Below are positions 32,477-63,067 of a DNA stretch of 64,000 nucleotides, in pieces. Position 1 is the stretch's first letter; each line of letters opens with the position of its first letter. The notes under the pieces are model-generated. The model was given only the letters and a program-made list of their open reading frames with translations. It was not told where the DNA came from and ran no database searches. A program made the position numbers and the translations under genes. This DNA is from Octopus sinensis. Lineage: Eukaryota. The DNA lies in contig NC_042999.1 in the NCBI RefSeq assembly GCF_006345805.1, positions 23,622,001 through 23,686,000 of the forward strand, written 5' to 3'.

Positions 32477-32587
32477 TTAATCCATGCCATAGCAGACCTT
32501 GCAAGAACGGTGGCGTATGTATTGGAAGAGGGCGGAGCTTCAGCTGTAAATGCCGACCTGGATATAGCGGACGAAACTGTCATGCAT
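32477..32587 (+). CDS. EGF exon 1 of cationic EGF-array/vWA gene
   Basis: tag|TT AAT CCA TGC...GCA T|GTGAGT, 111 bp, phase 1-1, NPCHSRPCKNGGVCIGRGRSFSCKCRPGYSGRNCHA with six EGF cysteines. Confidence 0.85.
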
Positions 32588-33495
32588 GTGAGTATAGCAT
32601 TGCAAAACTATTATATTTTATAGCTATAGATTAAGGATACTTTTACAAGTGCAGAAGGAGCTGCAAGGGAGCTGAGGTAGAAACTTCATTTATTTATGAA
32701 GAGGAATGTGATTGGATGAATGGTTTCGTGTAAGTAATAAGAGGATACAGCTTTGGGAGTCATTTAGATGTTATGTTGAACAACAACAACAAACACACAT
32801 ACACACACACACACTCTCTCTCTCACACACACTCTCTCTCTCACACACACTCACCTACAAACATACACATACACACACCTACAAACACACACACATACAC
32901 ACACATGCACGAACGAAACCCCCTACATTCATATTTGCATATATATATATTCATACAGATACACAGATATACATACATACATTCATACATATATACATAC
33001 ATATATATATATGTGTGTGTGTATGTATTTATATATGTGTGTGTGTGCCTATATCTGACCGCCACCACCATTGCCCGACAACCGATTTTGGAGTGTTTAC
33101 ATCCCCGTAACTTAGCGGTTCAGCAAAATTTACTAGTTAAAATAAGTACTAGGCTTACTACGAGTAAATCTTGGGTCAATGTCTTCCACAAAATCACTTT
33201 AAGGCAGCGCTCCAGCATGTCCGCAGACTGAAACAATAAAAGAATAATGTTTTATGCTTAACATTTCCGAAATCTTTATTTTTCATGCTGTGAGGGAGAA
33301 ATAGGGAAGACAAAACAAAATCACAGAGAGAGAGAGAGAGAAAGAGAGAGAGAAAGAGAGAGAGAGAAGCAAAAATGTTAAATAAGTAAAGACAATTAAT
33401 GGGGTGTTAATAAAAGGAAATGCCACGCTATTAATGCATTGTAAAAATACAGAAGACTGTGAATTAAGAATTTTATTTGTTCTTTTATGCGCCAG

Positions 33496-33606
33496 TTAAT
33501 CCATGCCATAGCAGACCTTGCAAGAACGGTGGCGTATGTATTGGAAGAGGACGGAGCTTCAGCTGTAAATGCCGACCTGGATATAGCGGACGACACTGTC
33601 ATGCAT
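33496..33606 (+). CDS. EGF exon 2
   Basis: cag acceptor, GTGAGT donor, 111 bp, near-identical to exon 1 (GRHCHA). Confidence 0.85.
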
Positions 33607-34032
33607 GTGAGTATAGCATTGCAAAACTATCATATTTTATAGCTATAGATTAAGGATACTTTTACAGGTGCAGAAGTATTGCAAAGGAGGTGAGGTAGAA
33701 GCTTCAGTTACGTATGAAAACGATGTGACTGGATGAAAGGTTTTATGTAAGTAATATCAGGGTACAACTTTGGAAATCCTTTCGATGTTATGTTGAACAA
33801 TAGCAACAAACACACGTCCAAACACACACACACACATACACACACGCACGCACGTACGACCCCCCACATTGAAATAGGGAAGACATAAGAAAAACAAAGA
33901 GTGAGAGAGAAAAATGGAAAATAGGTAAGGACAATTAATGGGGTGTTAATAAAAGGAAACCCCACTGTTATTGCATTGTAAAAATACATAAGACTGTGCA
34001 ATAGGACTCTTATTTGTTCTTTTATGCGCTAG

Positions 34033-34143
34033 TTAATCCATGCCATAAGAGACCTTGCAAGAACGGTGGCGTATGTATTGGAAGAGGACGGAGCTTCAGC
34101 TGTAAATGCCGACCTGGATATAGCGGACGACACTGTCATGCAT
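34033..34143 (+). CDS. EGF exon 3
   Basis: tag/GTGAGT, 111 bp, NPCHKRPC...GRHCHA. Confidence 0.85.
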
Positions 34144-34944
34144 GTGAGTATAGCATTGGAAAGAATCATATTTTATAGCTATAGATTAAGGATACTTTTA
34201 CAAGGGAAGAAGGAGTTGCAAAGGAGGTGAGGTAGAAGTTTCATTTATGTATGAAAATGAGTGTGATTGGACGAATGGCTTCGTGTAAGTAATATGAGGG
34301 TACAATTTTGGAAATCTTTTGGATGTTATGCTGAACAATAACGAAGACACGTCGAAGCACAAACACATATACACACGCACGCACGTACGACCCCCCACAT
34401 TGATATTTACATATATGAATATTCATGCACAAATATATAAATGCATATAATATATATATATATATATACATATAGTAAGGAAAAATTTTTTAAAATGCAG
34501 AATGCTCAAATGAAAGAAATTTTAATAAAAATGAGAAATTGAGAAATATATAAATATATAATCAATTTCTCATTTTATTAAATTTTTCTTTCATTTGAGC
34601 ATTCTGCATTTTTAAAAAAATTTCCTTACTTATCATTTCTCCACGTGCGGTCAACACAACCCACCATTTATTGATCTATATATATAATATATATTATATT
34701 ATATATATATATATATATTATATATATATAAATTTATATACATATTTAAATTATATATATATTATATATATATAATATATAATATATATATATATAGATA
34801 TATATATATATATATATATATATATATATATACATATTTAAATATATATATATATATAATATATATATATATATATATACATATTTAAATATATATATAT
34901 ATTATATATATATATAATATTTAAATATATATATATGTATTATT

Positions 34945-61970: not shown

Positions 61971-62084
61971 CATCAGAGCCCTGCAAGAAGAATCCTTGTC
62001 AAAACGGAGGAAAATGTGTGAATTTATGGAAGGATTTCAAGTGTATTTGTGATTCAGGCTTCCGAGGAAAACGTTGCGAAATAG
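61971..62084 (+). CDS. EGF exon 16 (post-vWA)
   Basis: ttttag/GTAATT, 114 bp, SEPCKKNPCQNGGKCVNLWKDFKCICDSGFRGKRCEI. Confidence 0.85.
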
Positions 62085-62470
62085 GTAATTTTTGGGAAGC
62101 ATATTATTTACATGGTTGTTTGATACGCTCCCCACACTCTCTTTCCCTCTTACACACAGACATACACACACGTACCTTCGAAACACGGAGTAGACGAAAT
62201 GGAGGCGGCTGAAAAAGGGGAATTTTCCTTGTGTTGTATGTCTTGCACCCTGTTTTTTCGTTGTTTAAAAAAAATGTCAGTTTCCATGGTTCTGTTTTTA
62301 TGTTTTCGTTTCTCATTGTGTTGGACGTTTTTTTTTGTTGTCCTGTACCCATATATGCATGTATATATACATATAGATGTAGGTACGTACATATATGTAT
62401 GTATATATGCATATGTTTTATTTATTATTTTGTTATATATATATATATCTTTGTTCATTTATTCACACAG

Positions 62471-62581
62471 TTGATCCTTGCAGTAGTTCTCCATGTAAAA
62501 ACAATGGAACTTGTATAAACGAAGGTTACGAGTTTAGATGCCAATGTCGAAGCGGCTTTCGAGGAGATCTCTGTTCTATAG
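62471..62581 (+). CDS. EGF exon 17 (post-vWA)
   Basis: cacag/GTATGT, 111 bp, DPCSSSPCKNNGTCINEGYEFRCQCRSGFRGDLCSI. Confidence 0.85.
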
Positions 62582-62956
62582 GTATGTATAAATATCATCA
62601 TCCTAAATTGATTAAACGACATCCATTATATCGTATGATCTATTTTAAATAATTTAATTAATGTATCCGTTCATTATAATACTTTCTGGGAGATTCACCG
62701 TTAATATCCGGTCTGTGCTTGTTTTTGATCTTCGAAGAAGTGTTCTAAACACTTTTGGCTCATCAGTTTAAGAGGACTTCCTGCTAACGCATTGTTTCGG
62801 CCTCGTTATGTGTCTCATCAGACGAAGCTACCACACGGCCGGGCCACTGAATGTCACAAGAGCATGAGCGTTTATTTATAGTAAATAGCTAACAAATTAT
62901 TCATCTCTTATGTATATACGTACATATACACATTTATCTATTTTTTAAAAATATAG

Positions 62957-63067
62957 TTGATCCCTGCAGTAGTTCCCCCTGTAAAAACAATGGAATCTGT
63001 AAAAACAATGGATACGAGTTTAGTTGTCAGTGTCGAGACGGATTCAGAGGCGATGTCTGTAATATAG
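62957..63067 (+). CDS. EGF exon 18 (post-vWA); the gene probably continues past the window end
   Basis: atatag/GTAAGT, 111 bp, DPCSSSPCKNNGICKNNGYEFSCQCRDGFRGDVCNI. Confidence 0.85.
   Translation: MIPAVVPPVKTMESVKTMDTSLVVSVETDSEAMSVI

Follow-up and report, generated by a model that had tools for sequence, protein, structure and literature searches.

Organisation of the locus

We analysed a stretch of 64 000 nucleotides from Octopus sinensis (assembly GCF_006345805.1, contig NC_042999.1, positions 23,622,001 to 23,686,000 of the forward strand; hereafter the window, from whose first letter all positions are counted). Its plus strand carries, between 32477 and 63067, a long array of exons encoding epidermal growth factor-like (EGF) domains, interrupted by a single exon for a vWA (von Willebrand factor, type A) domain. 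The six-cysteine EGF pattern gave 18 clean matches in a six-frame scan of the window, all on the plus strand and all between 32485 and 63060, while the upstream ~32 kb held no plus-strand match except microsatellite artefacts. Once joined, the exons form an open frame of 856 codons that encodes 15 EGF domains of 37 residues, a vWA domain of 189 residues and three more EGF domains, with canonical splice sites and phase kept in 19 of 19 exons. Pfam recognised EGF in 18 stretches of the joined product (E = 7e-115) as well as VWA (E = 2e-46), and the fold assignments, as judged from Pfam and from sequence matches to PDB entries, are unambiguous. Exon joining and Pfam thus bear out the spliced architecture of 15 or more EGFs, vWA and three EGFs that a preliminary description, made from the letters of this DNA, had proposed.

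Every exon ahead of the vWA is 111 nt long, AG/GT-bounded and of phase 1-1, its first two bases (TT or TC) and its last base belonging to split codons. At the junction, 14 of the 15 repeats have the codon T+TT (Phe) and repeat 12 has C+TT (Leu); the Val that appears in the unspliced reading frames is an artefact of reading the acceptor G, as the same description had noted. Cysteines occupy positions 4, 9, 15, 24, 26 and 35 of the repeat, and the inter-repeat linker reads A-F-N-P-C in all 15 (C-H-A-F-N-P-C in its fuller form).

Exon 1 (32477-32587; net charge of the encoded repeat +7) is of the consensus type and is followed by exons 2 (33496-33606; +7), 3 (34033-34143; +8) and 4 (38819-38929; +7). 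Exons 5 (41030-41140), 6 (41983-42093, identical to exon 5) and 7 (42935-43045), each +7, sit in triplicated units of ~953 bp, and exons 8 (44107-44217; +7), 9 (45533-45643; +7) and 10 (46712-46822; +8) lie beyond them. Exons 11 (49385-49495; +7), 12 (52416-52526; +7), 13 (53099-53209; +6) and 14 (55813-55923; +8) are of a divergent type, exon 11 having a one-to-one ortholog in Octopus vulgaris, and exon 15 (56920-57030; +8) is the final one ahead of the vWA. The intron that separates exon 14 from exon 15 contains a decayed EGF pseudo-exon (56072-56179, plus strand; aligned by tblastn as ILGETLVNPCKDGGECIRKGHRFA*KCRAGYTGQYC), in which a stop stands in-frame at a Cys position and the first Cys loop is lost. 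The vWA domain is encoded by one exon of 567 nt (58749-59315; 189 codons, phase 1-1), and the three EGF exons after it are exon 16 (61971-62084), exon 17 (62471-62581) and exon 18 (62957-63067), the last being followed by a donor GT.

Neither end of the reading frame is closed: an assembly gap of 100 N (32169-32268) lies 200 nt upstream of the first EGF exon and the donor GT stands after 63067, so that 32477-63067 marks only the visible part of the gene. The window holds the central ~30 kb of a larger gene; further EGF repeats probably lie within the gap, and the next downstream exon is placed by homology with O. vulgaris ~460 nt beyond the window end.

The intron between exons 3 and 4 is 4.8 kb long because a non-long-terminal-repeat (non-LTR) retrotransposon has inserted into it (~34950-37800, plus strand). 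The element is degenerate: an endonuclease-like N-terminus and the FADD motif of reverse transcriptase can be recognised, and stops and frameshifts break it. The only related copy in O. vulgaris is 69% identical, inverted and located in a different intron, and the insertion seen in the window is therefore independent.

Charge and composition of the EGF repeats

Net charge (K + R minus D + E) lies between +6 and +8 in each repeat ahead of the vWA and sums to +108 over all 15, in agreement with the strong positive charge (about +105) first reported for them. Their 555 residues include a single Asp, in repeat 12. The three EGFs that follow the vWA in the window carry net charges of +4, 0 and 0. 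As a measure of how unusual such values are, 1401 EGF domains from 226 retrieved relatives had a mean net charge of -0.2 (standard deviation 2.3), and 1.6% of them reached +6, nearly all from one soft-coral protein.

Three basic residues are invariant in the octopus array (K10, K25 and R27), while R7 and R33, like two adjacent basic residues at 17/18, are near-invariant. The divergent repeats 11-15 place their Lys and Arg differently and still total +6 to +8 each; this shift, together with the Arg-rich and equally charged repeats of an Octopus bimaculoides relative (see below), points to selection on charge as such. The repeats do not look like calcium-binding EGFs: no EGF_CA stretch passes in a Pfam scan of the joined product, and the A-F-N-P-C linker departs in 15 of 15 repeats from the D/N-x-D/N-E/Q consensus expected before the first Cys, in line with the earlier statement that the acidic calcium-binding consensus is missing. 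They are thereby set apart from calcium-binding arrays of the fibrillin type, for which this consensus and a beta-hydroxylation site are characteristic.

Tyr makes up 3.4% of the array and His 5.4%, the latter clustering beside the inter-domain linker in repeats 1-10. Metal bridging by His at the EGF junctions, where H5 and H36 flank the linker, was considered and rejected as a general mechanism: H36 is absent from repeats 11-15, and neither His is retained in O. bimaculoides. EGF domains may be O-glucosylated at the consensus C-x-S-x-P-C and modified with O-GlcNAc at C-x-x-G-x-S/T-G-x-x-C. The first consensus fits eight of the 15 cationic EGFs and the second 13 of the 15, which we record as a lead only.

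The vWA domain

The vWA domain is itself basic, with 28 Lys/Arg against 13 Asp/Glu (net +15; isoelectric point 10.2). The residues of its metal ion-dependent adhesion site (MIDAS) are present as D-E-S-G-S, the Thr of GRTNT and the Asp of ITDGK, at positions that align with those of the vWA domains of collagen VI and of the mussel protein PTMP1; charge count and alignment therefore agree with the preliminary description of a K/R-rich domain with an intact MIDAS. Among solved structures, its best matches are the mussel byssal protein PTMP1 and collagen VI alpha-3.

Coding constraint and turnover of the array

Exons 1-10 are 97% identical to each other, against 59-78% for their 250-bp flanks, and exons 11-15 are 80% identical to each other, against 30-40% for theirs. 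Pairwise ratios of nonsynonymous to synonymous substitution rates (dN/dS) between the divergent repeats range from 0.15 to 0.6. The corresponding ratio of pooled proportions (pN/pS) is 0.39 in the EGF frame and 1.29 in the alternative stop-free frame. The EGF frame is the selected frame and is under purifying selection.

An independent assembly of O. vulgaris (GCA_951406725.2) carries the same array at OX597816.1:25188866-25245589 (locus L003), with 97.4% nucleotide identity to window positions 53053-64000 in the unique DNA that the two share. There, 14 or more cationic EGF exons are intact and one, at the upstream edge (L003 ~470-580), has decayed: a Cys is changed to Tyr in it, and a TA microsatellite truncates it. 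Two intact EGF exons and the decayed one precede the counterpart of window exon 1, and the two O. vulgaris units that find no partner in the window would probably fall within its assembly gap.

The five proximal, divergent repeats are one-to-one orthologs (0.82-1.00 identity, unit plus flanks), whereas the distal, near-identical repeats match between assemblies at only 0.90-0.92. Window exons 5-7 (41030-43045) lie in ~953-bp units that are 94-99% identical, introns included, and share one best O. vulgaris counterpart; as read from these identities, they represent a recent triplication specific to the lineage of the window. Units 5-6 are a lineage-specific duplication on the O. vulgaris side. 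The distal array has turned over faster than the five proximal repeats, and the locus illustrates cleanly how an exon array turns over between sister species.

The rest of the gene and its relatives in octopods

Word-indexed homology searches, all of whose matches had about half to 1.75 times the length of the query and which thus appear to be length-limited, missed the public model of the gene itself and yielded only a truncated O. sinensis paralog (see below) and generic EGF proteins. An exhaustive search with the translated vWA exon recovered three proteins: CAI9719088.1 of O. vulgaris ('neurogenic locus notch homolog 2-like', 1195 amino acids), whose residues 282-469 are 100% identical to the vWA of the window; XP_014776970.1 of O. 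bimaculoides (927 amino acids; vWA 76% identical); and GAB1606482.1 of Argonauta hians (1583 amino acids; vWA 45% identical).

CAI9719088.1 continues, after the three EGFs seen in the window, with two EGFs, a VWD domain, a Cys-rich stretch, an EGF-like module and two PAN domains (Pfam: VWD 1.6e-21; PAN_1 1.8e-11 in two stretches; VWD 4e-22 when the C-terminal part is scanned alone). The VWD domain and the Cys-rich stretch (residues 6-372 of this C-terminal part) align end to end with the VWD-C8-TIL units (D assemblies) of FCGBP, MUC2, MUC5AC and VWF, at up to 95 bits per assembly for FCGBP. No hydrophobic or transmembrane segment was found at the C-terminus of CAI9719088.1.

XP_014776970.1 starts with a signal peptide (MKTLCFLTLIVIAVVLTRTSG) that leads directly into five Arg-rich EGFs of +6 to +10, after which come the vWA, five EGFs and a D assembly 90% identical to that of O. 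vulgaris. Between these Octopus species the vWA (76% identity) has diverged more than the C-terminal half (90%). GAB1606482.1 has the same C-terminal half and basic EGFs of +3 to +7, with the motif CHKRPCKNGG in common, and it contains three vWA-EGF units. A second Argonauta hians locus (L002, BAAFZT010000052.1; 1294-18173) encodes a vWA exon 44% identical to ours and then 21 or more EGF exons of near-neutral charge, in which two types strictly alternate and which the annotation splits into many 'genes' of 74 amino acids; it is another expanded EGF array of the same octopod family.

O. sinensis also possesses a paralog, annotated as 'matrilin-2', on an unplaced contig of 47 kb (VCDQ01000545.1, 10001-36463; 75% identity). 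It has a signal peptide, two cationic EGFs and a vWA 78% identical to that of the window, and it is truncated: the model runs into a mariner-type transposase open reading frame (ORF) and the contig ends 2.9 kb past the vWA. Its signal peptide and vWA group with XP_014776970.1 and not with the window gene, which suggests, from these sequences, that Octopus has two members of the family.

With the architecture pieced together from the window, its O. vulgaris counterpart and the O. bimaculoides relative, the predicted family is an octopod one of secreted proteins of the form (basic EGF)n-vWA-EGF5-VWD/C8/TIL-EGF-PAN2. The O. vulgaris complex has expanded the basic EGF block to at least 15 copies and raised its charge to +7 per domain. 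Outside the octopods, no relative of this architecture was found. Neither a transmembrane tail nor one-to-one orthologs across bilaterians, which the preliminary description had named as grounds for refuting it, came to light.

Public annotation and literature

Public databases already contain the gene; the 'notch homolog 2-like' names that it bears there are misleading, as is 'matrilin-2', given to the paralog. The N-terminal 245 residues of CAI9719088.1 (A0AA36AMX8) are repeats of LIHAIADLARTVAYVLEEDGASAVNADLDIADETVMH: here the 111-nt exons (L003 from position 10001) have been read one base out of phase, which turns the array into an acidic, Cys-free repeat (LIHAIADLARTVAYVLEEDG...). Both frames are free of stops in 15 of 15 exons and exon length is a multiple of three, so a model that starts from a wrong ATG runs through the whole array. 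The polycationic array is therefore invisible in the O. vulgaris reference proteome. Since the array in its correct frame also offers a trypsin site every few residues and is cut into fragments of 1 to 9 residues, existing proteomic surveys could not have detected it, and corrected gene models are needed before the protein is claimed to be absent from any secretome.

We found no mention of the family accession numbers in the literature, and nothing relevant on an octopus matrilin. A preprint on the matrix of the argonaut eggcase makes no mention of a protein of this kind.

Sequence upstream of the array

Nothing was found in the upstream 32 kb of the window, which comprise microsatellites, retroelement fragments and one long ORF, that ties this region to the EGF gene. 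The ORF (3818-5071, minus strand; 417 amino acids) is of low complexity, with runs of Gln, His, Asn, Ser and Thr and no Pfam match, and may represent an exon of an adjacent, oppositely oriented gene. Kilobase-scale AT-rich tracts of TA/CA-type micro- and minisatellites (12000-14000, 21000-23400 and 25600-28000; GC 23-27%) generate long spurious ORFs rich in Ile, Tyr, Cys and Val on both strands, and retroelement fragments resembling reverse transcriptase occur near them (e.g. 24168-24911, minus strand).

A putative secreted cross-linker

We consider it fairly probable that the gene encodes a large secreted extracellular protein, a multimerising cross-linker of a gel, cement or fibre whose cationic EGF rod binds sulfated glycans. 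Such a protein would consist of a signal peptide, at least 15 polycationic EGFs that do not bind calcium, a vWA with its MIDAS, five EGFs, a VWD-C8-TIL assembly, an EGF-like module and two PAN/apple domains, without a membrane anchor. The disulfide-stiffened rod, with ~+7 per 37 residues, would offer multivalent electrostatic binding to sulfated or carboxylated glycans and condense them. The D assembly and the vWA could provide protein-protein links, as in the multimerisation of mucins, VWF and FCGBP and in matrix binding by collagen VI and PTMP1. Since the exons are symmetric (phase 1) and their copy number changes between close species, rod length is evolutionarily tunable; it is possibly tunable by splicing as well. 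Polyanion binding, multimerisation and the tissue concerned are what we infer from this architecture.

The preliminary description had suggested a lineage-specific secreted polyanion-binding or glue protein. Secretion, as opposed to a receptor role, gains support from the O. vulgaris counterpart, which lacks a transmembrane segment and signalling tail, and from the signal peptide of the O. bimaculoides relative. The C-terminal half (two EGFs, D assembly, EGF-like module and two PAN domains) lay beyond the view of that description, and it moves the protein toward the mucin/FCGBP/VWF type.

As to the material, the cement of octopus eggs is reported to combine a mucoprotein of the peripheral gland with a sulfonated mucopolysaccharide of the central gland, both in the oviducal gland (PMC8976471), and for this reason egg-string cement is the most specific candidate; it and mucus are the leading candidates. 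The mucus of skin and suckers and the connective-tissue matrix could also be such materials. A bolder version of the same idea, which we put forward tentatively and hold to be unlikely as it stands, is that the protein supplies the polycation to a polyelectrolyte glue of two components, which cements octopus eggs into strings. Secreted by the peripheral oviducal gland, it would meet the sulfonated mucopolysaccharide of the central gland; the +108 EGF rod would drive complex coacervation, the coacervate would be hardened into cement by the D assembly and the vWA, and symmetric exons, rapidly gained and lost, would tune the length of the rod. If this were true, the octopus protein would do with structured domains what sandcastle worms and flatworms do with disordered polycations.

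Several points weigh against a secreted cationic cross-linker. Pfam calls neither C8 nor TIL in the C-terminal part, so that the D assembly rests on PDB alignments. The 5' end and signal peptide of the window gene were found neither in the window nor within 10 kb upstream of the O. vulgaris model, where tblastn with the N-terminus of the paralog and blastn with its first-exon region gave only matches to short interspersed elements. The ionic strength of seawater strongly screens simple electrostatics, and polyanion binding would thus need high multivalency. With Tyr as low as it is, the mussel type of chemistry based on 3,4-dihydroxyphenylalanine (DOPA) is not indicated. The gene models are computational predictions. 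Finally, A0AA36AMX8 is missing from the truncated supplement text of a proteome of skin mucus for which the database containing it was used; this is weak evidence, and the negative is limited in any case by the invisibility of the array itself to tryptic proteomics.

Alternative explanations

The protein might instead be an interstitial matrix adaptor, a matrilin- or collagen-VI-like component of connective tissue or cartilage whose rod binds glycosaminoglycans while its vWA binds collagen fibrils. Cephalopod cartilage is rich in glycosaminoglycans, the closest named matches of the vWA are matrilin, cartilage matrix protein and collagen VI (with PDB matches to collagen VI alpha-3), and NCBI names the paralog 'matrilin-2'. 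The matrilin coiled coil is missing, however, and the D assembly and PAN domains are typical of proteins of mucus, egg coats and clots. Rapid copy-number turnover and the fast divergence of the vWA (76% identity against 90%) also fit an external secretion better, and we regard a role inside the tissue matrix as rather unlikely.

Clotting proteins likewise combine VWD-C8-TIL, vWA and EGF domains, as the matches to VWF illustrate, and a six-cysteine module of 37 residues and +7 is in the size and charge range of beta-defensins. A haemostatic or immune function can therefore be conceived, in which a clotting and entrapment factor of the hemolectin/VWF type binds microbes through its cationic modules or releases them as defensin-like peptides. 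The fold is nevertheless a canonical EGF according to Pfam, and the C-H-A-F-N-P-C linker leaves no conserved dibasic processing sites between modules. Processing into defensin-like peptides was rated unlikely because inter-module cleavage sites are missing, and the haemostatic or immune explanation as a whole appears improbable.

Some features of the locus would suit a decaying or non-expressed array, i.e. a functionally irrelevant recent segmental repeat or an assembly artefact: exons 1-10 are near-identical, three units resemble each other at 94-99% with their introns, an assembly gap adjoins the array, decayed copies occur in the window and in O. vulgaris, and the O. vulgaris model is out of frame. 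Against this, the exons are far more conserved than the introns, dN/dS falls below 1 only in the EGF frame, splice sites and phase are kept in every one of the 19 exons, a second long-read assembly has the same array, and O. bimaculoides and Argonauta have retained cationic EGFs; a dead array is accordingly very improbable. A receptor or ligand of the Notch pathway, for which only the 'neurogenic locus notch homolog 2-like' names and generic EGF similarity speak, is contradicted by domain content (no LNR, NOD, ankyrin, DSL/MNNL or transmembrane segment in the O. vulgaris, O. bimaculoides or Argonauta proteins, and vWA, VWD and PAN domains that are foreign to Notch and Delta) and can practically be dismissed. 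In the complete O. vulgaris and O. bimaculoides proteins, Pfam recognises no families other than EGF, VWA, VWD and PAN.

Comparison with known systems

The closest parallel within the genus is octovafibrin (XP_014771937.1), a 29-EGF protein that forms the load-bearing fibre of the egg tethers of O. bimaculoides (PMC10336842). Both are built of long tandem EGFs that do not bind calcium and are (in our case by prediction) secreted, structural and held by disulfides, and the cysteine spacing 5-6-9-2-9 is common to the two (positions 5, 10, 16, 25, 27 and 36 in octovafibrin, PMC10336842; 4, 9, 15, 24, 26 and 35 here). Octovafibrin, compared by its description, differs in that C-type lectin domains cap both ends of its ~29 EGFs and in having no vWA, VWD or PAN domain (PMC10336842). 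No lectin C domain was detected by Pfam in any family member scanned, and the window gene is a different gene.

EGF proteins of bivalve holdfasts offer a second parallel. The EGF-repeat proteins mfp-2 and Sbp9 are cohesive components of the byssus (PMC6244088) and Pvfp-5beta is an EGF protein with a positively charged face; these proteins share with ours the basic tandem EGF modules and have a cohesive role in a marine holdfast (PMC6244088, PMC9314366, PMC6410801). Unlike the octopus gene, they have no vWA, D assembly or PAN domain, and they rely on DOPA/Tyr and on metal or calcium, in contrast to an array with 3.4% Tyr and no calcium signature. The preliminary description had invoked mfp-2 in particular. 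Its tandem EGFs in a basic protein (PMC6410801, PMC6244088) do recur in the octopus array, and the analogy stands to that extent; homology beyond the EGF fold is not indicated. The matches named 'adhesive plaque matrix protein 2-like' are spider and coral proteins of 35-50% identity, and mfp-2 of Mytilus itself was compared by description.

With FCGBP, the gel-forming mucins and VWF the octopus protein shares a full-length VWD-C8-TIL alignment and the secreted, Cys-rich character of multimerising or cross-linking proteins. In contrast to them it has one D assembly only and, by Pfam, no proline-threonine-serine (PTS) region and no CTCK domain, and the GDPH autocleavage motif of FCGBP and MUC2 D4 is replaced by GKMFYRTFDD. 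These families, for their part, have no polycationic EGF array and no such placement of a vWA.

A vWA flanked by EGFs is also found in matrilins and cartilage matrix protein, and the MIDAS-bearing vWA of the window is most similar to this group together with collagen VI and PTMP1. Matrilins, however, stay far below the octopus array in number and charge range of their EGFs and have different C-terminal domains, and the octopus gene has no second vWA. We rejected identity with a matrilin: the C-terminal coiled coil is absent and its place is taken by VWD-C8-TIL, the EGF-like module and two PAN domains. [quoted passage not shown] Domain content therefore upholds the earlier judgement that this is not Notch, matrilin, fibropellin or crumbs.

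Beyond the molluscs, Mlig-ap1 of the flatworm Macrostomum lignano is a K/R-rich cohesive glue protein with VWD and EGF domains that is blocked by heparin (PMC6410801). It resembles the octopus protein in being large and, with extreme K/R-rich regions next to VWD, TIL and EGF domains, in belonging among secreted proteins, in its case with a cohesion that polyanions block (PMC6410801). Its charge resides in unstructured K/R repeats and not, as in the octopus, in folded EGFs; it has no vWA or PAN domain and is related neither by lineage nor by sequence. Only one further array of polycationic EGFs was found among the retrieved proteins, in isoforms of a soft coral, Xenia sp. (XP_046863728-34; P0121, P0002), publicly named 'notch homolog 1-like' or 'adhesive plaque matrix protein 2-like', with 7-10 tandem EGFs of 37 residues at +7 to +9 each and 55% identity to the octopus repeats. 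These proteins lack vWA, VWD and PAN and have on their flanks duplicated Cys-rich domains outside any Pfam family; they probably resemble the octopus array by convergence.

What is new in the octopus gene is that the folded EGFs themselves carry an extreme and conserved positive charge and are coupled to a vWA, a predicted D assembly and PAN domains. Were cross-linking by charge to prove true, the repeat would be a defined module, amenable to recombinant work, for wet adhesion or for capturing polyanions at high salt, and the gene would give molecular access to octopus egg cement or mucus, of whose proteins little is known. Tandem-EGF proteins such as octovafibrin, mfp-2 and the fibropellins are an emerging class of extracellular biomaterials. 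The octopus protein is most like the EGF-repeat structural and cohesive proteins, on the one hand, and the D-assembly proteins of mucus and clots, on the other, and is a member of neither group nor of any other compared here.

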